Source: Trichosphaerium sp. ATCC 40318
Lineage: Eukaryota > Protista > Tubulinea
DNA length: 64,000 nucleotides
NCBI GenBank assembly: GCA_038496445.1
Contig: JALMLS010000310.1
Span: forward strand, 62,001 to 126,000
Direction of reading: 5' to 3'
Each line of letters starts with the position of its first letter. Position 1 is the stretch's first letter. Shown here piece by piece: positions 1,000 through 62,049 of the stretch. Position numbers and translations under genes: made by a program. The notes beneath the pieces are model-generated. The model was not told the origin of the DNA. It made no database searches and was given only the letters and a program-made list of their open reading frames with translations.

Positions 1000-2805
1000 A
1001 TGGCAACACAAGAAGGCCGATCTCTACGTAGAGAACTATCTCATCAACAAGACAGTTATAAGGAGTTTTGGCTTCGAAATGAAACTGAAGATCTCTCTAG
1101 CGTGCCAAGAGAAGCCTTAGAGAACGAAGTACGCGGAGAATTCAAATTTTCTTGAATTACACTTCACTAACTATCTCGCTAGGTATTAGCTCTACGCAAA
1201 GAGCTCAATGTAAAGGACAATATACAGATGAATACTTATCACGAATACAGAGACGTTTTATCTCACGGCACAACCGGAAAACATCCGTCAGACTACCTCC
1301 ATTTGAACCAAACAGTATCTTCAGATGCTTCAGAGACAGTGTCTATTCGTGAAACGCTTCGGAAAGCAGGTAAGTTGGCCGACTTTTCGTTTTTTCAATT
1401 TTTTCACCGCAAACCACTATAGAATCGCAGTAAATAACATAGTAATTAGGTAACCGTGCTCTTGGTGGTGGTGTACTTGGAGCCGCAGCTATGGGCATGC
1501 AGGTAAGGGAGATTTTTGGGTTTTTTTGATTTTGGATTTTTATCACGTTCTAACTCCTTTTCAGGTTACAACTCTCATGTGGATGAGAACCACAATGAAC
1601 TACCAGTACCGCCACGGTACTACAACAACACAAGCGATTAAACACTTGTACAAGGTAACATTCTCTTTCCTATTCCAATAAAATCGCTTGTTTACCCTTG
1701 TAACAGGAAGGAGGGTTACCAAGGTTTTACAAAGGGTACCTACCAGCTATGTTCCAGGGACCTCTAAGTAGATTCGGCGATACAGCCGCAAACGCCGGAA
1801 TTATGGCTCTTTTGGATTCGAATGACACTTTAAGGAATTTACCTGTCATGGTTAAGACTGTCGCTTCTTCAGCTACTGCTGCTCTTTGGCGTATAGCACT
1901 TATGCCTATCGATACATGTAAAACAATTATGCAGGTAAGAAGGATAAAGGAAAAAACTGTTCTAATTTACTTCACAATTTTTCTTTTTTTTTATTGTATC
2001 GACGCACTAACAAATCCAAGGTTGAAGGAAATCAAGGCTTTAAAATTCTTGCAAATAAAGTTAAAGTTGGTGGTGTACCTGTACTATATCACGGAGCTTT
2101 GGGATCATACGCAGGTCAGTAAAACTATTTACAAGAGCACTAGGAAATGTCTCTTTAAAAGTCTCATTACTAACTTTTTGTAGCTACATTTGTTGGTCAC
2201 TATCCGTGGTTTGCAACCTTTAATTTTCTAAGTGCCTCTATTCCAAACCCAGATGACCTATGGCTTAAACTAAGTCGTAATGCGTTCATTGGTTTTAGTT
2301 GTTCTGCTGTATCTGATTGTGCGTACTCAAACAGTTTTGTACCTTATTTCTTTTTCTGAGAAAAAAAAAATGAAAAAAAAATTGTGAAGCTAATGGATGT
2401 GCCTTTAGGTATCTCTAATTCTCTTCGCGTAATCAAGACAACTAAGCAAACAACTAAAGAACCTATAAGCTATAGAGGCGCTGTGCGTATGATTTTAGAA
2501 AAAGACGGAGCTATGGGTCTTTTTGGAAGAGGTTTAAAGACACGTCTTTTATGCAATGGTCTTCAAGGCATGTTATTCGTAGTATTGTGGAAGGTACGAA
2601 CAAAAAAATTTGTTTCTAAGACGAGATTTTAGAGAAGTTGCAAAAGTAGTGGTCTTTTTTTAAGATACCGTTGTGTCATCTTTTCGCTAAATTATTGTTT
2701 TTTATTGCCATTTGAAAGCTTTTAGATTAAAAAAAGAATTTTTACGCTAATGTTGTTTAGGGCATGGAAGAAGCGTTACTCAACCGCTACGGTGAATATT
2801 TCTAA
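1000..2805 (+). CDS. Mitochondrial carrier family (SLC25-like) protein, ~9 exons
   Basis: Spliced product has three carrier repeats: RALGGGVLGAAAMGMQVTTLMWMRTTMNYQYRHG...EGGLPRFYKG; LMPIDTCKTIMQVEG; SNSLRVIKTTKQT...DGAMGLFGRGLKTRLLCNGLQG. Ends GMEEALLNRYGEYF*. Confidence 0.9.
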
Positions 2806-3065
2806 TGTAGTACAAGCATAGGAACCCTTTTTGTAAAGTAAAAATCAAGTTGAGCAGTTGTGTAATGATTTCTTTGTCGAAAAAACGCAGGCAAAATATC
2901 GCAAACTTTACGACTTTCTTGAAAATTAGTTGATATTTCACTTTTTTTGAACGTTTCCAACTCCAAATTATCAAGAACGCTTTGAAGTACTTTAAACATG
3001 CATTCCTATCAGTATTATTCTGTTTTAGCTAAAACCACTTTTTTTTTTTCAGTTCTTTCTGGAGG

Positions 3066-3072
3066 TATAAAA
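3066..3072 (+). promoter_or_regulatory. TATA box (TATAAAA) about 30 nt upstream of the candidate ncRNA
   Basis: TATAAAAG lies 28-31 nt before AATGGGGAG, the 5' strand of the terminal helix. This spacing fits a type-3 Pol III promoter. Confidence 0.55.
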
Positions 3073-3096
3073 GGGCCTTGTTTGCTGTTTTCTAAT

Positions 3097-3617
3097 GGGG
3101 AGCGGCAGTAGTACGATACGCAACCAACAAACTAGCGTCTGTTGGACTGATACCTGCAGCGGACCCGAAACTAGGACAGTGAGAGAACTTTGGCATATTC
3201 GTCCAATTAGATATTCCGCTGTCTTGTTCGGGTAAGCAACGGTTGATGTCAGCATTAGAGACAGCTGTGACCGGATTGCTTAAGTCGCCATTGGAAACGT
3301 GTTTCTTCGTTAACTATGACTATCTCAACAACTCCTGAAAAGCACCTATCTGAACTTCAACTATCATAAACTATATGTTTCATTGTTTCTGTAAGCGCAG
3401 GTGTAGAGTAGGCGGGAGTTCAAGCAAATTGGACGTCCATGAAACACCGCTACTGCGTTTACAACCATCATTGAACATCCTTCCAGACGAGGAATACAGG
3501 GCTCTATATGAGTCTTGTACCCGACTACCACAAATAAGCTCGCGTAGCCTGACACTTCCCTTAATTGGGAGCAAACTCAGCGCGAGAAAAATGCACGTGC
3601 CGCCACCTCCCCTTTTT
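3097..3617 (+). ncRNA. Candidate ~520-nt structured non-coding RNA (Pol III-like), family unassigned
   Basis: GC-elevated intergenic block with no credible spliced ORF. The 5' end GGGGAGCGGCA pairs with the 3' end TGCCGC-CAC-CTCCCC, followed directly by TTTTT. At least 8 internal helices of 7-17 bp, with G.U wobbles that work on the + strand. Confidence 0.7.
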
Positions 3618-3624
3618 GTTTTTT
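3613..3624 (+). terminator. Oligo-T Pol III-type terminator (TTTTTGTTTTTT)
   Basis: T5-G-T6 run directly after the 3' strand of the terminal helix. Confidence 0.5.
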
Positions 3625-3851
3625 GTCATGACTTACATGTTGCGAGGCTAACAACTATGGGTACACCATTTATAACTTTTTTTCTTCAGGTATTGAAGTG
3701 AGTGCGAAGGGTTACGTAGTTTACAAATTCTGTGTGAAAAAAAAGTTGTACTTTAAATAAGTTGACTGTAGCAGTAGTGGTTTACCTCAACGCAATATAA
3801 CACTGATTTACGTATTTACGTAACCTATGGGCGTTTAAAGAAACTTAAATC

Positions 3852-4528
3852 ATGTTTCATCAATTAACTGCAACCACCAGCCTCGTAGAGGAACTGGATA
3901 GTGCGAAAAGGACATAGAACTACAATTTACTCATATTTCCATTTAGAAAAAATATTAGTCGTTTTAAGAGATGGGAGAAAGTACGTAGGCATATTACGGT
4001 CATTTGATCAATTCGGTGCGCATTTTGATGCATTTGAAGCTATTTTAAATTAGACGAAATCTAACGCATGCTATAGCGAATGTGGTAATGGAAGACACCG
4101 TTGAGCGCGTTTTCGTTGATAATAAGTATGGCGAGAAAGACATTGGTTTATTTGTAGTACGTGGAGAAAACGTTACGCTCATTGGTACGTATACCCTTAT
4201 CCTGAGTGGTTTGTTCATTATTCAAAAAGGCGAACTTGACTTGGACAAAGAAGCAGCATTGCGTCGTGATAAAACAATAATACGTGTAACTAAAAAAGAG
4301 ACACCGAAGCTCATTCAAGTACGTACAATGAAGATATTCACAAAACACAAAAAAACGTTGAATTTCTATCATTTCCTACTTTCTTTGTTGTAAAGGAACT
4401 CAACTAATTTTAAACGTAAGGAAGCAAAGAAGCGTCAAGAGGAAGCAGCAATAATCCAAAAAAAGAAGAATACAGTATTAAGACAATTTGGGTTATACGC
4501 TGATCCTGAAGGCCTTGACTTTTTGTAA
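3852..4528 (+). CDS. LSM1: Sm-like protein LSm1, 5 exons
   Basis: TSLVEELDKKILVVLRDGRKYVGILRSFDQFANVVMEDTVERVFVDNKYGEKDIGLFVVRGENVTLIGELDLDKE is the characteristic LSm1 sequence, followed by a helical C-terminal extension. Confidence 0.93.
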
Positions 4529-4863
4529 ACAAAAAAAAATTGGGAAAAAAACAATGTCATTTAATGAAAAAAAAAGAAAAAAGGTCGAAATATTTGAACC
4601 CAAGTTGTTTGCATAGTTTTCTCTTGCTATTAGCAGCTTATATGTGTAATTAAGCATTACCTAAGTAGTAGCTAAAAGGTGACACAGTCTACGTTAACGC
4701 AGAAAAGGCAAAAATGTCAAACTTGTTTTACTTTTTTTTATGTTTTGACATTTCTTGTTCAATTAACAGTACAACACAATTAATAAAATAGGGTACCCGT
4801 ATAAATCTTAGAACAATCAAATATGATACAGTGATGTTTATAGGCGAATCAAAAGGAATTTGG

Positions 4864-7364
4864 TTATGACTACAACAAGTTAATAAACTTTTGAAAAAAA
4901 ATGTAACGAAATTTCGTTTATGACTTGCCTTCCATATCTTAAGAATACCATCATCACTGTAACTACCAAGAAGATTTCTGTGAGGATGATGACAAGCACC
5001 AATAATCTACATAATACCATTAGATAACGTAAAAAAAAAACCAAGAGGAGGAAGACTGAAAAACAACAGCAAAAAAAATTTCCGTTACCTCTTTGTCATG
5101 GAGCTTTACAAAAAATTCTAGCTTGTCTGTCTTTGTAGAGAAACAGTATAACACGTTATCTTCAGCAATACCATAAACCCATTCACACTTTGGAGATACA
5201 ACACAAACAGTAAAATCACTTCCTTTCGTGTGTCCTGCAGAGTACGTCTTGAGGATCTACAAAAAAAAATGAGCCGACTTAATTACATGTAAAGTAAAAC
5301 CCTTGACTTAAATAAAGGCACGTACCTGTCCGTCTAAATTCATGACATATAGTGTACTGGATTGATCGCATACAACAATATTATCAGTCCCAATAAGAGA
5401 ATGAATTGAGTGTATAGGTGTTTCAGTTGTTAAGTTAGAAGGTGAAAAAGTTTGAAGGCAATCTGTAGTCTGAGCATCCCATGTACGTATAGTGCCATCT
5501 GAAGAACATGATATTACTACATCACCATCTGAAGACCATATAGCCCTATTTACAAACGATGTATGCCCACGGAATATCTTTAATGTCTTTCCAGACTTTA
5601 AACCATGAATCCTTTGGTAGAAGTTAAACTACTTGATTTTGTCTTTAAAAAATCACTGTGGGATATTACCTTACTGTATTATCGTAAGAAGCTGATAGAA
5701 CTTTGTTGTGACCAGATGAAAATTGTACTGAAGTAACACCTAGACGTGAAATGTCAAAATAAAGCAAAAACGTGCAAGCTCAAAAAAAAAATAACTAAAG
5801 TTTGCGCTGTACCTTTGGTGTGAGCTTTAGGGAACCTCCTTAGACATCTACCTGTTTTTATTTGCCACACCTACATGATTTTAAGTCAATTTTATAACTC
5901 AGAAAACCTAAAATGTCAAGGTAATGCGAAATTTTAACGGTTTTTTTTCATACCTTTATTTTACCATCTTGAGAGCCAACTACTATTGTTTCAGAATCGC
6001 GACTAAATTGCATACATAAAATAGCTTGTTCATGTATCATAAATTTCTCTTCAGCCTGTCGTAAAAGTCAGTTACTTATGTACAAATTGTTTTCTTTTAC
6101 AAAGTGTCACAAACCTGATACTTTAGGTCCTTTCTTAACTTGCCAGATAGAAAGTCCCATACTTCTAAGAATCCATCAAATGAACCAGTAACGAGAAATT
6201 GACCATCAGGAGAAAATGCTAAACCAAGTATAAGGATAAACAAACAAGGTACAAAGTCATACCAGCAACTTCCGGATGAGATTTCTGAGCAAATTTTATA
6301 GTAACAGCAACACGTCTCGGATAAGTCTCATGGGTATCCTTATCAGGCGCACGTCCTCTAAATAGATCATATGCTTGACCAGCAGCCAATTGACCCTTGA
6401 TTCGATATTAGTTACACAACGGGAAAAATAAAAGGCTGCGTCGGTAAAATACTTTAAGTTGCTGATACTTCAGTGCTTGTCCAAGTAAAGAAATTAACCT
6501 TGATGGCGGTACAACAGATACTTCTTCAGCAAGTGATTTTGCTAATCTTGCTCTGCTCTTTTCTTTAGATCCTAGAGGGTAGTACTACAAAAAACAAAAA
6601 AGGGTTAAACAAAGCAAAAAAAAAAAAATTAATAATTTCTCGATACGCACTTCTTTGGCGTCAAAGTAACTACGAGCTAGCAAATGCTCTAATTTATGAT
6701 ACCTATCTGGTTGTTCTGCTTTCATTATTGTCATTGGTTGTGTTTGGCGTAATATAGTGCGTGCAACCTATCAAAAAAGGCGTGTTAAGACTGATGTCTC
6801 TTTGCATAAAAAAGTGTCAAGATATATGACTGTTTCGTCTTGTAATGCATGATTTAAAAGCACTATTAGCATCGCGGTATTGCGCACCTCCAGTTCTTGT
6901 AGCTCGGCAAGCTCTAGAATAATTTGTTCGTACAAAGCCTGCATTTTTGCCATTGGTAGCTTTACTTGATCAATAGCGGACAGTACGTTTTCCCAACGTC
7001 CGTTCTTGACGTTTGAAATAAAAACATCGACATTTTCGACAGTATTCAGCGATATTTGAGCTTCTTTCTGTTTAAACATACTTTGTAAGGAGAATAATTT
7101 CAAAAAACAAGTGAAAAAAGCGCCACTATAATTTTAAGCGTAAAAGACGCTCAGATTCGAGACTACACGCTTATTCATACCTGTAGGGCTTCAAATGTGT
7201 TTAGCAAGTTACTTTCCTTCAAAAATTGAAGACAAAGGCGGATTACACTACAACGTTATTATAAATGAGAAATAAACGGTGCAGAAACATTAATGTTTTA
7301 GTTTGATTTTTTAGAGACTCAGAACATTGTCGTACTCTCCAGCGTCAATCTCTACTGTGCTCAT
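4864..7364 (-). CDS. SMU1: WD40-repeat spliceosomal protein SMU1, ~14 exons; last intron is GC-AG
   Basis: [24 protein letters not shown] (LisH), [24 protein letters not shown] (CTLH), [95 protein letters not shown]|S*. Confidence 0.95.
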
Positions 7365-7576
7365 GCTGCCTCAATCAATTCGGCATTGCCAAAGTATTTT
7401 GTAGTGGTTTACGCTAAGATTTTCACCCAAAATATCCATCTGGTTTAGTCGGAGCGCGTAACTCTGTATTTTTATACTATTTCGGATACTTGTTCACGCA
7501 GCTTACGCTGACTTGTTTTGGTTTATTGTCAATGTCATGATTGTCCGTAATTTCTAAAACGGTGCAAACAGTGCAA

Positions 7577-10500
7577 ATGGCATCGAAAACTAGCAAGATG
7601 ATCAAAAAGAAGAAAAGCATCGACTTGGCTGGTAAGCGATTGGACGGTGAACAAGTATTGGCGGAGCTAAAACTGAGGCCGTGCCCAGAGACGATATCAG
7701 AGGTTAAGATAAACAATAACTTGGTGTCCTCGCTCAATTTCGACGCACTTGCTGCTCTTTTACCGAATCTATCAACTTTAAACGTGAGCAAGAATAATAT
7801 ACGCAAATTGAGCCCAAATATCGCGAAATTAACGTCGCTCACGAAGCTCAACCTCAAGGATGTAGGGATTAGCAAATTACCGTCCCAAATCGGTGGTTTA
7901 ACTAATCTCACTGATCTGCAGCTACAACACAACATGCTCGCGTTTTTGCCCAATCAACTCACGGACTTGGTAAATTTGAGCAAGCTTAACGTATCCAACA
8001 ACAAGTTACGCTCATTGTTGCCCTCCTTGTTCAAAATGACGAAACTCTCGAAGCTAAACATAGAAAATAATCCGCTCATGTGCCCACCGACATTTATTTG
8101 CGCTAAAGGACTCACCCAGACACTACGCTACCTGCAGCATGTTTACGAGGACCTAAACGACAAAGACTTGCCCAGATTTCCTAAACTGCGTTTACGAACA
8201 ACACAGGACGCTACTGATACTGAGGGATCGCGTTCGTTTTTGGTACAATAACTTTTTATTTTGAAACGAAAAATCGTTGTATACTCCCTGACTTACTGCT
8301 ACAATAGACGGACGTCAGAGATGCATTTTTTGTAGTATCTCATTGCGTAACAACAACACAAGTACGTGATCTTTTACAGTTTTTTTTTTGAAACTAGGCA
8401 TTTGCCTCTAATAGTATTTTTTCTTTGCAACAGGGAAACAGACCTTACATGGAGGATCGTTATAAAATAGAACCTGCAATAAATATTGTAGACTACTTAT
8501 CAAAAAGACAATTACAGCGTATAGAACGGCGGAAACAAAGAGCTCAAAGGCGGATAAGTAGAGAAGGAGCAAAACCCGATGTACCAGGTGAAGAAACGCG
8601 TGAAAGCATCTCAAAGGCACATTTACGCCAGCGGAGTAAGTCTGAGACGAAAAATATAAGTCCTTCTAAATCGTACGTAAACAAACGGTTAAATTTTGAA
8701 ACGTGCGTATTTGTAACCACAGTATGCGTATTTTAATTTTTAACTTCTTTTCTACCCTCCTTAATTTTTTTTTAAACGAACACATTTCGTCAAAATCGTG
8801 TTCTTAGCCATCTACGACCTCAACCTTTTTTTTGTTTTTTTTGATACCCATTTTTGGTTAAAACACGCTATCGGGTTGCAATTACGCATGGGAGTAAATT
8901 TTTATAGCGTGTGGTTCTATAGATTTTTGTATGGGTTTTATTTCGAGTCTAGAAAAAATTGAAGAGAGCTTCGATGTATTTTTTCTTTGACTTTGTTCGA
9001 TTTTGTGATTTGTTTTTTTCTTTTTGCTGTTTGAAAATATTTTATTTGTTGCTACAGCTGTATGTATATATTATTCAAGTGCTCACCGACTTATTTAAAG
9101 ACATAGTGGGAGTAGAAGATTTTCAAATCCTCCACAAGTTGACGAGCCATCTTCTCACTCTAATGGAGTCCGAAGTCCATCTCCAAGTAAAAAAGCTCTT
9201 GGTCGTTTAGTTAAGAGAAAAAAAGGAAAAAAAGCTTCAGCACTACCTGATATACAAACTATTGAAGAGGAACCTTCAGAGCACTCTACAGAGGGTGATG
9301 CTAATCTTGATTATAATTTTATGACGTCTATGGGTAAAATAGCATTCTTTGGTTTATATGATGGACATGGTGGTGATAGAGCGGCTGATTATTGCACGGA
9401 CTTGCTTCATGTAAATATCTTTAAGCAGTACCGTTGTTTTATGGAACATAATATACCTGCTGCAATGAAACAAGGTTTTATAGATACTGATAAGGGTTTT
9501 CTATCTCTTGCAAAAGGAGGAGATCAAGTACGTCATTGTTTTGTGAAACTTTTATTTTTTCTTTTATTTTTTCGATTTTCGTTTCTAACGTGAGAAGAAG
9601 TGGCGAGATGGGTCGACTGGTCTTGTACTTTTATTACAGAACAATAAGTTATTTACTGCGCATGTGGGGGACTCACGTGCTGTACTATGTCGTGAAAAGA
9701 GAGCGATTGAACTTACTGATGATCATAAACCTGATCGTGAAGATGAACAACAACGGTATGAAAATACCTCCCTACCTAAAGCTATATTTACTGACTAGTA
9801 CTTTAGGATAGAGTCTATTGGTGGTAGTGTGGTTTCAAATTCTTCAACAGGATGGATTGCACGTGTGAATGGGCATTTGGCTGTTTCAAGAGCTTTTGGT
9901 GATATACGATTAAAAACACCTTCAGAATTCGTTACTGCTGTTCCTGAGCTTGGTGAATTTATTCTTGATCACAATGACCAATTTATTATTATGGCTTCTG
10001 ATGGATTATGGGATGTGATGATAAACCAGGTATGTAAAATGTTCAGTAATGCGATGATATATCAAATCTTTTTTTTTTATAATTCACGTAAGCAACTCTA
10101 AAGAAATTTCTTTTTAGGAAGCTGTTGATATTGTACGCAAGTGTAAGGACAAAAAAGATGCGAGTGAGGAACTGGTTAATCGTGCTTTAAAATTAGGTAT
10201 GCATGGTGAATACATTCACAATCATTCAGACGAGTTTACTTTGTAATATTATTTTTTTGTTTGTACTAACCTTTTTCTTCTTCAGGTTCAAGTGATAACA
10301 TTACTGTTATTGTTATTTGGCTGCGATGGACAATTGACTTTCCTAGCACACCTAAAGCCCCTGGTTCACACGTTTCTCCCAAAGTAGAGGTTGATTCTGT
10401 TGCAAGCCATTCATCGTCTAGTCCAAAACGGTCAAGCGAAACTGAAGGTAGTCAAAATAAATCAAGTAACGGAAAATTTGTTACTATTGGAAAACGCGAT

Positions 10501-10794
10501 AAGCGTGGATCTAAACCAAGACCTGGTAAATCTCCTAGGTCTAGGAGGCATTCAGAAGCAAAGGATCGTAAGGAGAAATCAGATACGAGTAAAGAAAAGA
10601 GGCATAAATCAGCACAAAGACAGCAAAAAAGTTCAAAAAAAAGGGAATCATCCAAAAGACAACTAAAGCAACAACAACAGCAAAGTGTTGTTGCGAAATC
10701 AAATACTAGTATTGAAACAGTAGTAGATAGTGTAATATCAGATCCGGGTGACTCTGGTTACGAGGCTGCGGAAGATACCTTGTCAAATTCGTAA
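7577..10794 (+). CDS. Leucine-rich repeat plus PP2C (PPM) protein phosphatase with basic Ser/Lys/Arg-rich inserts and tail
   Basis: N-terminal LRRs (LTSLTKLNLKDVGISKLPSQIG...LNIENNPLMCPP). PP2C motifs QGNRPYMED, FFGLYDGHGG, AHVGDSRAVL, DHKPD, RVNGHLAVSRAFGD, IMASDGLWDV and GSSDNITV across spliced exons. Confidence 0.9.
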
Positions 10795-10976
10795 TTGTAC
10801 ATTATGTAATATAAAATTTTGATGCCGTCGAGTTCTCTAAGTTTCCGCATCTTAAGTACTGTCTGGTGATCAATACTTGCGATTGTCGGCACAAGAGAAA
10901 CCACAATCTTGAGGTTGATTTACGCGTCTTCATTTTAACAAAAAGAAAGGTGGTCTTTACTCTCTGAGCTTTGTGT

Positions 10977-11478
10977 TTATAGACTTTGTTTTTTTATTGT
11001 AGACGCGTAGAGCGCAAAATCGAATACTTGTAGACTTCGGTCTTTACGTTTTTTTGTTTCAGGTTCTCGGAATAGGTTTAATCGAGGTACTTTACGAGAA
11101 GTACAAGCGCCAAGTGTTCTTGAAGGATTTGTAAACAAGTAACGGTTATAAAGTAACTCACCGAATGACTGGAGTAGATGCTATGTTGCTTGATGCAACA
11201 CGTATTTTTTCAAACAGAAAGCCAGCCTGTTTTTTCGATACAATGAGCTTATTCGCTCTGCGTAGTTGTCTTTTAGATGTGAGGTTTCTGTCTGCACTTG
11301 TTCTTGTTGTTGTCCTTTTGTTTTCTATCCTTGTTCTTGTAGTTTTGTTTACTTTATATTTACCACTTTGGCGGCGTATAGGCACTAGCGAAGATGAAAA
11401 ATAAGATTTGAGAGCAGGTGTATCAATTTCATTGCAGTCAAATACGCTACGTGCTACTTCTCCACGTGCCATTCTCAT
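10977..11478 (-). CDS. Hypothetical highly basic protein (~150 aa, 2 exons)
   Basis: The 106-codon ORF ends at a GTGAGT donor. After the ...CTTCAAG acceptor the frame continues TLGACTSRKVPRLNLFREPETKKRKDRSLQVFDFALYASTIKKQSL*. No recognisable domain. Confidence 0.45.
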
Positions 11479-15408: not shown

Positions 15409-16740
15409 ATGTGCTCTTCTTTGAATCTACTGGATCTTCCGCGTGAAATACAAACATACATTTGTACTTTCAACAAAGAAGCATTTACAAAATTCCATAC
15501 ACTATCAAAAAGGGCAGCCATTAATACACATTTTGATGACAGCTTGAAACGTCATGGAAGATGGATAGGATGGTATCTGAGTGGAAAAGTACAACGAATC
15601 GAATACGCAAAGAATGGTCCACGTTTAGTTTGGTATGAAAGTGGAGAGCTTATGGGAAAATGTGTGGTGGTTAATGGTAATATATGTGGTGAAACCAGAT
15701 TATGGTACAAAAGTGGACAACTTCAAGCACAAGACATGTGGGTTGACGATAAAAGACATGGGGAAGTAAAACAATGGTATGAAAATGGCCAACTTAGAGC
15801 ACAAGAGATGTGGGTTGATGATGAAAAACACGGAGAAGCAAACGTCTGGTATCAAAACGGACAACTTGAAATACAAGAGATGTGGGTTGATGGTAAACAA
15901 CATGGTGAGAGAAAGATGTGGTACGAAAATGGCCAACTTAAAGCACAACAGATGTGGGTTGATGATGAACAGCATGGAGAAGCAAACTTCTGGTATCAAA
16001 ACGGACAACTTGAAATACAAGAGATGTGGGTGGATGGTAAACAACATGGTGAAGCCACAGTGTGGTATGAAGGTGGCCAACTCCAGGTAAAGCAAATGTG
16101 GTTTGAAGGTAAACAGCACGGTGAAACAAAGTCGTGGTATGAAAATGGACAACTCAAAGCGCAGACAATGTGGAGTGAAGGTATACAACACGGTGAAGTA
16201 AAAATGTGGCACGAAAATGGACAACTAAAGGTACAATTCAATATGATTTATGACACAGTGGATGGGGTGTACAATACGTGGCATGAAAATGGACACCCTC
16301 GGATACATCAGGTGTTTGTTGATGGCAAGAAGCATGGCAATAGAAAAATATGGTTTGAACGTGGACAACTAAAGGCGCAAGAGATTTGGGTTGATGGTAA
16401 ACAACATGGTGAAGCACAGTATTGGTATAAAAATGGCCAACTTAGAGCACAACAGATGTGGGTTGATGGTAAGTTAAACGGTAAGTCCAGAGAATGGACT
16501 GCGGATGGTAAAACTGTTGAGGAAGGTAATAATGCTATAAAGCAATTGCTAAGTCAAAGACATCGCAGAAAGTTTGGTGGCAATAACAAGAATGGCAACA
16601 AACAAAGTAATGCAATGATAAGATCACTCAACATAGTATTGTTCCCTTTCCATATTTTCAAAAATGTGGTTTATGGTTGGTTCAGATACTTTGCAAACAG
16701 TATCTATGTATCAATGTCGTATTGGTCAAGAAAGCAGTAA
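15409..16740 (+). CDS. F-box-like plus MORN-variant (MORN_2/YwqK-type) repeat protein, intronless
   Basis: N-terminal LLDLPREIQTYICTF, then ~13 repeats of 24 aa, WYENGQLxxQxMWVDGKQHGExxx. Confidence 0.85.
   Translation: MCSSLNLLDLPREIQTYICTFNKEAFTKFHTLSKRAAINTHFDDSLKRHGRWIGWYLSGKVQRIEYAKNGPRLVWYESGELMGKCVVVNGNICGETRLWYKSGQLQAQDMWVDDKRHGEVKQWYENGQLRAQEMWVDDEKHGEANVWYQNGQLEIQEMWVDGKQHGERKMWYENGQLKAQQMWVDDEQHGEANFWYQNGQLEIQEMWVDGKQHGEATVWYEGGQLQVKQMWFEGKQHGETKSWYENGQLKAQTMWSEGIQHGEVKMWHENGQLKVQFNMIYDTVDGVYNTWHENGHPRIHQVFVDGKKHGNRKIWFERGQLKAQEIWVDGKQHGEAQYWYKNGQLRAQQMWVDGKLNGKSREWTADGKTVEEGNNAIKQLLSQRHRRKFGGNNKNGNKQSNAMIRSLNIVLFPFHIFKNVVYGWFRYFANSIYVSMSYWSRKQ
15775..16062 (+). repeat. Near-identical 144-bp tandem duplication (two MORN units) inside the CDS
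   Basis: 15775-15918 and 15919-16062 align without gaps, with long identical runs such as TGGTATCAAAACGGACAACTTGAAATACAAGAGATGTGGGT. Confidence 0.85.
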
Positions 16741-52687: not shown

Positions 52688-54145
52688 CTAAGTATTCCTT
52701 GTCTGTAATTGACCATCTGGTGCCCATTCCTCGAATTCACCATGTTTTTTGTCATTGATGTAAACACCAACTGAGCGAACTTGACCATTCTTGTACCACT
52801 CTTTGTGCTCGCCGTTCTTCTGACCAGCAACATACATAGATTGTAGCTTCAGATTACCATTACTAAACCAAATACGTTGAACTCCTTCTCTTGCACCATT
52901 CTCATAATAGCATTGTTCCCATAGCTTGCCATTATCATACCACTTATTGTATTCTCCTTCAAGTTTATCATAGATATAGTAGCAATGTTCTTCAAGTTGA
53001 CCATTTTCATACCAGTCTTTACTTTCGCCAGTAATACTTCCATTATCAAACATACATTGTAAGCTCAATTTTCCGTTCTCGTGCCACGCCTTAAACTCAC
53101 CATTTTTATCACCATCAATAAGCATAGCTTGTAACTTCATTTGTCCATTCTCGTACCACTCCTCATGTTTGCCATGTCGCTTGCCATCAACATACAAAGA
53201 TCGCATATGGAGGACTCCATTTTCATGCCATTCACTGTACACACCATGCCTCTCGCCTTTTACAAATGTATCTTGAAACCTTAATCGTCCATTAAAAAAC
53301 CATTCTCTGTGCTCACCTTCCTTTTTACCACGAACAAACATACCTTGGGAACACCGTTGTCCATTGGTACACCACACTTTGCATTCACCATGCCTTTTAC
53401 CATCAACCCACATAGTATGGTCCCTGAGAGTTCCATCTTCATACCAAGACTTGCACTCGCCATTCTTTTCGCCATTGACGAACACAGCAGTTTCTTTAAG
53501 TTGACCATGCGTGTACCAAACCTTACACTCGCCATCTTTTTTATCATCAACAAAATGACTTTGTTCAACAACTTGTCCGCTATCACACCAAAGCTTGAGA
53601 TCGCCGTTCCGTTTACCCTTAACATACATACTTTCCCCCATTATTTGCCCACTCCTGAACCATGCCTGTTGTAACCCATCATGCTCATTATCTACCCATT
53701 TACAAAGCACTTCAATTTGTCCATTATCATACCACCTTTTTTCGGTTCCTTGTCTTTTGCAATTAACAACCTTTAATTCAGACTTCAGTTCTCCATTTTC
53801 ATACCATACCTTCTGCATACCGTTGGGTTTATCATCGATAAACGTAGCTTTTGTCTTGACTTCTCCAGTCTCGTACCACTCCGTTGCCTCACCGTGTCTC
53901 TTTCCATCAACCATCGTTAATCTATGATGTTTCTTCCCAGAACGGTACCAATATATCCAACTACCATTCCTTTCAAGTGAGGTATTGTAGCGAGTGTTGA
54001 TTGCGGCCTGTTTTGAGAGACGAGGGAATTTTTTATAAATTTCAGCGGCAAAAGTACATAAATAACGCTGGATATCGCGAGGAATATCTAATATAGTACA
54101 CCGGGTTGTGATAGTAGGGTTATAAGGCCCAAGCTTTGCTGACAT
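52688..54145 (-). CDS. F-box-like plus MORN-variant repeat protein, intronless
   Basis: ILDIPRDIQRYLCTF...LSKQAAINTRYNTSLERNGSWIYWY (clear paralogue of 15409-16740), then ~17 repeats of 24 aa, WYENG. Confidence 0.88.
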   Translation of the reverse strand: MSAKLGPYNPTITTRCTILDIPRDIQRYLCTFAAEIYKKFPRLSKQAAINTRYNTSLERNGSWIYWYRSGKKHHRLTMVDGKRHGEATEWYETGEVKTKATFIDDKPNGMQKVWYENGELKSELKVVNCKRQGTEKRWYDNGQIEVLCKWVDNEHDGLQQAWFRSGQIMGESMYVKGKRNGDLKLWCDSGQVVEQSHFVDDKKDGECKVWYTHGQLKETAVFVNGEKNGECKSWYEDGTLRDHTMWVDGKRHGECKVWCTNGQRCSQGMFVRGKKEGEHREWFFNGRLRFQDTFVKGERHGVYSEWHENGVLHMRSLYVDGKRHGKHEEWYENGQMKLQAMLIDGDKNGEFKAWHENGKLSLQCMFDNGSITGESKDWYENGQLEEHCYYIYDKLEGEYNKWYDNGKLWEQCYYENGAREGVQRIWFSNGNLKLQSMYVAGQKNGEHKEWYKNGQVRSVGVYINDKKHGEFEEWAPDGQLQTRNT

Positions 54146-61917: not shown

Positions 61918-62049
61918 ACCATGGTAGTGGTGAGTGATATTAAAGAACAAATGTATAATAAAAGACAAAACCGGAAAACAAGGATTGACTTCAGTAACAT
62001 GATGCATATAACAGAACAGTTACAGTATGTACACAAGGTGCGGTTTTAC

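Follow-up and report, generated by a model that had tools for sequence, protein, structure and literature searches.

To our knowledge, three hosts of the double T-loop are known so far, namely the ribosomal L1 stalk, RNase P and the bacterial T-box leaders, and the two that lie outside the ribosome are a cis-acting leader confined to bacteria and RNase P, which is universal. The subject here is a gene on the + strand of a 64,000-nucleotide stretch of DNA (the window) from the amoeba Trichosphaerium sp. ATCC 40318, which covers positions 62,001 to 126,000 of contig JALMLS010000310.1. The gene lies at 3097-3617 of the window and encodes an abundant RNA of about 0.5 kb. In sequence, base pairing and the lengths of its junctions, one hairpin of this RNA (3390-3463) replicates the L1 stalk of the ribosome. 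Our favoured reading, to which we give about an even chance, is that the RNA belongs to an undescribed family of abundant ~0.5-kb RNAs with an L1-stalk module that binds the protein uL1 and/or docks tRNA.

The double T-loop follows the invariant pattern AGNNA...UGNNA, to which T-loop 1 adds one U in the case of the L1 stalk. The G19:C56 pair of tRNA stacks on a platform of two residues, one being the last but one ahead of T-loop 1 and the other the middle residue of T-loop 2 (Lehmann et al., PMC3664808). In ribosomes, uL1 contacts helix 77 (H77), the base of H78 and loop B of the stalk, and bacterial and archaeal L1 also binds a mimic of the stalk in its own mRNA (PMC5689012). This operator in the L1/L11 mRNA resembles the amoeba hairpin in being an L1-binding site copied outside the ribosome. 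The operator mimics, which are autoregulatory, differ in being minimal, with J2-1 short and the double T-loop lacking, and in controlling translation in cis (PMC5689012), whereas the amoeba RNA carries complete rRNA-type loops and is an abundant eukaryotic RNA that is taken to act in trans. In a limited full-text literature search, no eukaryotic non-coding RNA (ncRNA) of its own was found to be described as carrying a copy of the L1 stalk. The hairpin agrees with the L1 stalk in each of the tests applied to it as a module, whereas the RNA taken whole belongs to none of the families compared, and we regard the RNA family as new and built around a known module.

The L1-stalk module

The hairpin at 3390-3463 matches positions 2125-2216 (L1 stalk, H76-H78) of the Rfam model LSU_rRNA_bacteria with 15 bits and an E-value of 0.0086, in a search of the middle third of the RNA alone, which loosens the Rfam filters. 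For an independent covariance model (CM), 120 bacterial 23S loci were fetched by a loop-B/H77 pattern which the amoeba RNA does not match. Stalks of 92 nt were cut from the fetched loci, and the CM was built from an alignment of 48 diverse ones; in this alignment H76, H77 and H78 are backed by covariation, with compensatory changes in 19 of the 27 pairs. Searched against both strands of the window (128 kb), the CM gives a single match, at 3390-3463 on the + strand and over the full length of the model, with 34.6 bits and an E-value of 3.4e-7, the E-values being rough by the tool's own account. In the controls, which covered 16 loci with rRNA, bacterial stalks outside the training set reach 87-100 bits, and no other sequence there exceeds 15 bits.

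The module shows the topology H76 - loop A - H77 - H78 - loop B - H77' - H76', all on the + strand. H76 is the closing stem (3390-3400/3453-3463) and is followed by loop A (3402-3410), which is composed of UGU and AGAGUA, the latter being T-loop 1 (3405-3410), with G3403 as the platform residue. H77 (3411-3415/3447-3451) pairs GGCGG with CCGCU, a GA linker (3416-3417) leads to the hairpin H78 (3418-3434), and loop B (3435-3446) reads GUCCA, UGAAA and CA, with T-loop 2 at UGAAA (3440-3444) and A3442 in the platform. All junction lengths equal the bacterial consensus: 9 nt for loop A, 5 bp for H77, 2 nt for the linker, 12 nt for loop B and 0 nt for the spacer. One H77 pair is C-G where all 48 bacterial stalks have U-A, which is a compensatory change. 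The invariant residues of the double T-loop are present as A3405, G3406, A3410, U3440, G3441 and A3444, together with the extra U3409 and the platform residues G3403 and A3442. A descriptor written from the published rules (PMC3664808) finds the E. coli stalk as the sole match in its rRNA operon and 3390-3463 as the sole match in the window. Its expectation is 8.5e-4 matches per shuffled RNA and 0.7 at the scale of the whole window, where the descriptor alone is not significant.

The amoeba hairpin and the L1 stalk of large-subunit rRNA (H76-H78) are thus alike in helix order, junction lengths, the AGNN(U)A of loop A, the GGNGGGAG core, the UGAAA plus two nucleotides of loop B and the G/A platform. 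They are unlike in that the amoeba copy is not part of an rRNA but is embedded in an RNA of 516 nt that has a TATA promoter and a T-run of its own, has flanks that are not rRNA-like, carries a short H78 that varies among paralogues and a G at position 4 of T-loop 1, and scores 34.6 bits versus the 87-100 of bacteria. With the double T-loops of T-box leaders and RNase P it shares the six invariant residues and the platform logic for stacking of the tRNA elbow, and like the T-box it is a non-ribosomal RNA that could bind tRNA through the module. Unlike these two, it has the L1 type of connectivity with H77 and H78, has no specifier loop, antiterminator or P4 core, and gives no Rfam T-box or RNase P match.

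The likeness to rRNA is confined to the module. The flanking rRNA helices (H75, H79 and beyond) are not found, the Rfam alignment extends no further than H76, and the remaining RNA gives chance-level short matches only against E. coli 23S and 16S rRNA. Two of these, a likeness of UAGUACGA at 3107-3114 to the sarcin-ricin loop and of CCAUCAUU at 3464-3471 to the GTPase centre, were rejected as chance-level BLAST matches. As a separate observation, there is a slight excess of 8-10-mers common to the RNA (3097-3612) and E. coli 16S/23S rRNA (p of about 0.02-0.03 against shuffles). Base composition could account for it, as could a faint trace of rRNA descent outside the L1 module.

Expression and the paralogue family

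Contigs of four public runs (X1, X2, X4 and X7) were compared with positions 2000-5000 of the window (3,001 letters); X4 (a metagenome) and X7 (organism C) are recorded as RNA-seq libraries. Both X4 and X7 contain an unspliced contig that runs from 3096/3097 to 3495, a second contig of X4 spans 3466-3606, and contigs of X1 span 3141-3470 and 3481-3605. The depth of the RNA contigs is 64-112 in X4 and X7 and 5,826-11,394 in X1, and the flanking mRNAs have depths of 0 and 2-9 in these runs, so that the RNA exceeds the carrier and LSM1 mRNAs beside it by a factor of hundreds to thousands. In X2 both flanking mRNAs are present fully spliced at a depth of 16-24 and nothing of the RNA is seen, as would be expected of an RNA with no poly(A) tail if the library was poly(A)-selected. 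The gene is real and expressed, and its RNA is very abundant and non-coding. The longest open reading frame (ORF) on the RNA (108 codons) has no protein relatives, and the products of the spurious ORFs on it have no exact entries on record. No back-joint of a circular RNA was found among these contigs.

An earlier note on this DNA, made by a model from the letters and a list of ORFs, had predicted an unspliced RNA from the + strand, and the contigs are indeed unspliced from 3096/3097 to 3605/3606. The contigs do not show strand; the + strand is assigned because of the TATA box, the T-run, the absence of four consecutive T (T4), the 15 G.U pairs in the + strand fold and the match of the L1-stalk CM on that strand. 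A copy of the RNA made from the - strand would contain U4 at two places.

The TATA box that was pointed out in that note (TATAAAA, 3066-3072) is indeed there, recovered also by a pattern scan, with its first T at -31. The contig starts place the 5' end 31 nt after this first T and 24-25 nt past the end of the box, in agreement with the predicted start. The T-tract that was said to follow the closing helix directly is likewise present on the + strand as T5-G-T6 (T5 at 3613-3617, terminator as a whole 3613-3624), a terminator of the type used by RNA polymerase III (Pol III) and the first T4 after 516 T4-free bases. The T4-free stretch (3089-3615) coincides with the RNA, and only 2.5% of the 516-nt windows in the 64 kb are free of T4. 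The RNA is also a GC island, with 47% GC versus 37% for the window. A pattern scan of the RNA finds no internal A or B box; GAGUUCAAGC was rejected as a B-box-like candidate, given its place in the H78 tip that the paralogues do not conserve.

Further upstream, an element ACCACTT (3034-3040, + strand, -63 from the start) was found by pattern scan and is tentatively regarded as similar to the dictyostelid upstream element DUSE, which is placed about 60 nt upstream and for which a two-C variant is described (PMC7919456). The amoeba element is placed like DUSE but fails the strict Dictyostelium discoideum consensus. With a TATA box at about -30, no internal T4, a T-run terminator and a non-polyadenylated product, the gene has the features of a type-3-like Pol III gene, and the sequence points to Pol III-type transcription. 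We infer both the polymerase itself and the exact 3' end, so that the transcribed RNA (3097-3617, + strand) is given as approximately 516-521 nt, unspliced and non-polyadenylated.

The contigs break where other transcripts share sequence with the RNA, which reveals several expressed paralogues with a common 3' part of about 140 nt. The summed depth in X1 over 3414-3514 is approximately sevenfold that of the 3097-3617 copy. One paralogue, P-b, is represented by a 378-nt contig (depth 51-89) that joins the sequence at 3444 and has two differences up to 3495. P-b shares the node 3466-3495, hence the contig 3466-3606, and its path indicates a paralogue whose last ~140 nt are identical and whose 5' part, of ~326 nt, has diverged. 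The contigs of P-a and P-c join at 3437 and 3532, respectively, and P-c differs in the 3' strand of the hairpin at 3495-3519. A fourth copy matches 3273-3311 with four differences and 3461-3493 with two, and has a diverged middle of equal length. No paralogue is located within the 64-kb window, and exact searches with the most conserved 20-21-mers gave 0 matches in metagenome contigs, viral contigs and prokaryote genomes.

The visible paralogue fragments include parts of the stalk. In the 30-nt loose ends, P-a shows AGAGUA, GGCGG, UA, the hairpin GCCAC-ACUU-GUGGC and a 12-nt loop B that ends in UGAAACA. P-b shows yet another H78 hairpin and a 13-nt loop B with UGCGA as T-loop 2, and its T-loop 1 is outside the visible part. 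In the paralogue T-loop 2, positions 1, 2 and 5 are kept and positions 3 and 4 are changed, and the H78 tip is replaced. In these short fragments, invariant residues that are kept beside a tip that is free to change look like the pattern expected if the L1-type fold were under selection.

The copies also bear on three other readings of the RNA. A small-RNA precursor, or a family of Pol III transcripts derived from a retroelement or similar to short interspersed elements, would fit many related, expressed copies with a common 3' part; we regard this as very improbable, as full-length contigs dominate, one copy is found in 64 kb, and the RNA has an external promoter, its own terminal pairing and no A-rich or repeat tail. 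Equally slim is the chance that the RNA is a piece of rRNA acting in trans, with a large subunit, cytosolic or mitochondrial, whose L1 stalk is encoded by this separate gene and not in the main LSU rRNA. The full stalk with its long rRNA-type loop B and the great abundance are compatible with such a role, and 5S rRNA is a precedent of a separate rRNA made by Pol III, but diverged paralogues with differing H78 tips and 5' domains are unfit for a core part of the ribosome, the flanks have no similarity to rRNA, and the ends of the RNA pair with each other and not with another RNA.

The third reading concerns the segment that is most conserved in the family according to the contig graph (3461-3493, + strand), which consists of the single strand ACAACCAUCAUUGAAC and a 5-bp hairpin of the minimum free energy (MFE) fold (3478-3482/3489-3493, loop CCAGAC). 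The RNA could be a lineage-specific scaffold in which the likeness to L1 is a captured rRNA relic or convergence with no role in uL1 or tRNA binding, and which acts, in the manner of Y, vault, 7SK and dictyostelid Class I RNAs, through other parts such as 3461-3493, the CUAUCU(N)AAC repeats or the 3' stem. It is the stretch 3461-3493, and not the stalk, that varies least among the paralogues, and most of the RNA is not rRNA-like. The T-loop invariants, junction lengths and H77 pairing are, however, kept also in the paralogue fragments while H78 varies, which looks like selection on the fold, and we consider the scaffold reading tentative and rather unlikely. The amoeba RNA resembles Y, vault, 7SK and dictyostelid Class I RNAs as an abundant Pol III-type RNA with paired termini, a U tail and membership in a family with constant and variable parts, and it further shares with the Class I RNAs a 5' end rich in G and the placement of an upstream element near -60 (PMC7919456). 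It differs from all four in being 5-10 times longer, in lacking GAUC and in having no Rfam match, and none of them is known to carry an L1-stalk module.

Overall fold, known RNA classes and genomic surroundings

The 521-nt RNA folds on the + strand with -154.1 kcal/mol (z = -3.05), and one of 100 dinucleotide shuffles does as well; the - strand has a z of -1.52. The comparison with shuffled controls, a check that the earlier note had proposed, favours the + strand fold, and the G.U wobbles on that strand to which the note had pointed are recovered as well. With pair probabilities taken from the partition function, the best-supported element is P1, the end-closing helix. Its 5' strand (GGGGAGCGGCA, 3097-3107) pairs with 3598-3603 and 3608-3612 of the 3' strand (3598-3612) across a 4-nt bulge with probabilities of 0.86-0.99. 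P1 has 11 bp and a duplex energy of -19.0 kcal/mol, which is reached by none of 9000 segment pairs of the same geometry from the window (best -15.8), so the closing helix that had been proposed is confirmed. Directly 5' of its 3' strand, the junction 3593-3600 reads GCACGTGC and includes a CACGTG palindrome.

The nested helices that had been drawn inside P1 were recovered in part, all of them on the + strand. Those that hold are the outer stem of the long hairpin H4 (3163-3233; 7 and 10 bp plus apical pairs in the MFE fold, outer stem probability ~1.0), the L1-stalk hairpin 3390-3463 (0.95), the 10-bp hairpin H7 (3495-3519; 0.84-1.0) and the 3' stem-loop H8 (3539-3586; 6, 4 and 5 bp with internal loops, outer and apical stems 0.97-1.0), which lies between P2 and P1. 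P2, the second closing helix, is tentative: its 5' strand (3108-3115) pairs in the MFE fold with the 3' strand at 3522-3528 with a probability of 0.43. The helix at 3124-3145 (0.57) is also weaker, and that at 3233-3282 has a probability of 0.2-0.3 and is replaced by other pairs in the MFE fold. A K-turn considered within the latter (3240-3273) has only a 2-nt bulge and is unconvincing.

Between 3283 and 3389 lies a G-poor tract that is weakly structured in the MFE fold and contains direct repeats. The motif CUAUCU(C/G)AAC occurs twice (3320 and 3346) and has relatives in CUAUCAUAAAC (3361) and in CAUCAUUGAAC (3466), the last within the most conserved segment of the family. These repeats and their relatives could be repeated single-strand binding sites. 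Two pseudoknots had also been proposed (3200-3208/3427-3435 and 3376-3383/3439-3446), and these were not confirmed: in 32% of the dinucleotide shuffles a perfect complementarity of 9 nt, and in 28% one of 8 nt, is just as frequent, and the two pairings are incompatible with the L1-stalk fold because they use the 3' strand of H78 and T-loop 2.

At the gathering score, Rfam returns no family for the whole window. At E<=10 on 2900-3800 and 3090-3625, it returns only two entries, a 26-nt viral pseudoknot on the - strand and the Drosophila hairy localisation element HLE. The HLE match lies in the spacer upstream of the RNA gene (2929-3013), scores 24.7 bits versus a gathering score of 60 (E 0.026) and is probably due to chance. 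Of the two possibilities left by the earlier note, a highly diverged RNA of the telomerase or RNase P class or an undescribed class of large ncRNA, the second is favoured by the lack of an Rfam family for the whole RNA and by its abundant, unspliced, Pol III-type character.

A telomerase RNA of the plant or ciliate (Pol III) type was suggested by the external TATA promoter, the U-tract at the end, the end closure and the 3' stem between two closing helices, all of which are shared with that type. In addition, no telomerase RNA is yet known for Amoebozoa, and none is listed in a 2025 review (PMC12133305). Unlike the plant and ciliate RNAs, the amoeba RNA has no template or supported pseudoknot, is very abundant and has many paralogues. 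The reported lack of a CCCUAA-type template stands, since no 6-mer of any CCCTAA permutation is present anywhere in 3097-3612, and the candidate thus failed the template test for the CCCTAA type. The complementary 8- and 9-mers that would form its pseudoknot are at chance level and overlap the L1 fold. With an RNA depth 1000-fold above that of mRNAs, which is more than expected for a telomerase RNA, we regard this identity as extremely unlikely.

The other class named, a diverged RNase P-class ribozyme or another tRNA-processing RNA, would carry an L1-type double T-loop in place of J11/12-J12/13 and would act on the acceptor end with another part. The elbow-docking module is the same as that of the S-domain of RNase P (PMC3664808), the RNA is end-closed with nested helices, and its highly conserved single strand would begin some 11-12 bp below the platform, roughly the length of the acceptor/T-arm. 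A pattern scan of the RNA, however, finds no consensus for CR-I and CR-V forming P4, with P4' 3' of P2', no Rfam RNaseP or MRP match is obtained at E<=10, the connectivity is of the L1 and not the P type, and the many paralogues and very high abundance are untypical, so that membership in this class is very unlikely. The look-alikes AGAGAAC, UGGAAAC and GAGUUCAA were rejected for RNase P/MRP, being in the wrong order and context, and GAGUUCAA falls in the tip that is replaced in the paralogues. Functional kinship with RNase P in the recognition of tRNA, with no membership in the family, is possible by analogy.

The remaining classes were compared, like RNase P/MRP, by consensus patterns from established knowledge, and the pattern scan agrees with the earlier observation that a helix 8 motif of signal recognition particle (SRP) RNA and a GAUC motif of 7SK are lacking. 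SRP RNA was rejected with no helix 8 GNAR/AGCA motif, no Alu UGUAAU and no Rfam match; SRP RNA also differs in that its 5' end does not pair with the very 3' terminus, as happens here. For 7SK, no GATC occurs anywhere in the RNA and the 3' end lies in the closing helix, not in a hairpin next to the U tail. Small nuclear and small nucleolar RNAs were set aside with no Sm site, no U1, U2, U5 or U6 signatures, no box C/D or H/ACA and no Rfam match, the only finds being a GUAGUA hexamer and one relaxed box C. U17/snR30 has look-alikes of m1 and m2 in the RNA, but both the H/ACA architecture and a 3' ACA are missing, and the assignment is incompatible with the hairpin at 3163-3233.

The RNA gene stands alone in a spacer of ~900 nt between two predicted protein genes on the + strand. 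Upstream are the last exons of a mitochondrial-carrier gene (1749-2855, stop near 2803), identified by GT..AG joints in mRNA contigs, the spliced translation and weak per-exon matches to Mito_carr. Downstream is an LSM1-like gene (3780-4544) with an mRNA start near 3780, an ATG at 3853 and five exons, identified by joints, the spliced translation and LSM domain matches (E 1e-6). The introns of both genes are very short (45-167 nt, GT..AG, within 2112-4421). In X1, a joint at 4185-4232 (TA..GC), alternative or erroneous, competes with 4183-4229. At 4869-4929, the skipped ends CT..GC on the + strand, seen in two runs, correspond to a GC-AG intron in a gene that follows LSM1 on the - strand. One contig of X1 links 2381 to 4566 through a 30-nt A/G-rich filler and is probably an assembly chimera of the two mRNAs.

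Elsewhere in the window, two long single-exon ORFs (15409-16740 and 52688-54145) encode MORN-repeat proteins (Pfam MORN_2, E 1e-50 and 1e-59, respectively). The exact sequences of both are not among a collection of 15 billion proteins. The ORFs of the window are not in that protein collection, and the nearest long ORF has no close relative there.

Possible function and significance

In the favoured reading, the RNA would hold uL1 or tRNA outside the ribosome, as an 'L1 stalk on a scaffold'. The module at 3390-3463 would fold like a real stalk and do one or both of two things: recruit uL1, with contacts at H77, loop B and the lower part of H78, and let a tRNA or tRNA-like RNA stack its elbow pair G19:C56 on the platform. 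The terminal helix and the U tail may bind La-type proteins, and the proteins common to all particles would sit on the constant 3' domain (3444-3612) together with the terminal helix. What would set the paralogues apart is the variable 5' domain and the tip of H78.

Several points weigh against this reading. About 85% of the RNA is left unexplained, position 4 of T-loop 1 is G here versus A in all 48 bacterial stalks, and H78 is approximately half the bacterial length. The CM was made from bacteria only and gives rough E-values, and the stalks compared are bacterial. The paralogue evidence consists of 30-nt loose ends, and one locus is seen in full. An RNA of this abundance would tie up much uL1 if it were bound stoichiometrically, and no second tRNA contact (anticodon or CCA) was identified in the RNA.

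An extension of the favoured reading, which we consider unlikely, is that the family of Pol III RNAs is a trans-acting counterpart, in a eukaryote, of the principle used by T-box leaders and RNase P. The double T-loop would seize the tRNA elbow, the variable 5' domain would pick the partner and the constant 3' domain would carry effector proteins, which would make the RNA a programmable tRNA-handling or tRNA-sensing ribonucleoprotein outside the ribosome.

Read modestly, the locus brings to a genome that has no annotation a gene family that is well defined and strongly expressed, and the binding of uL1 and tRNA offers a concrete, testable handle on an orphan RNA. The amoeba family would be the fourth host of the double T-loop, one that is abundant, independently transcribed, 0.5 kb in length and eukaryotic, and it would show that an ancient module has been reused outside the ribosome. 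If binding of uL1 proves true, the L1 operator of bacteria and archaea would for the first time have an analogue in a eukaryote, and if binding of tRNA proves true, the RNA would represent a new layer of tRNA biology in amoebae.

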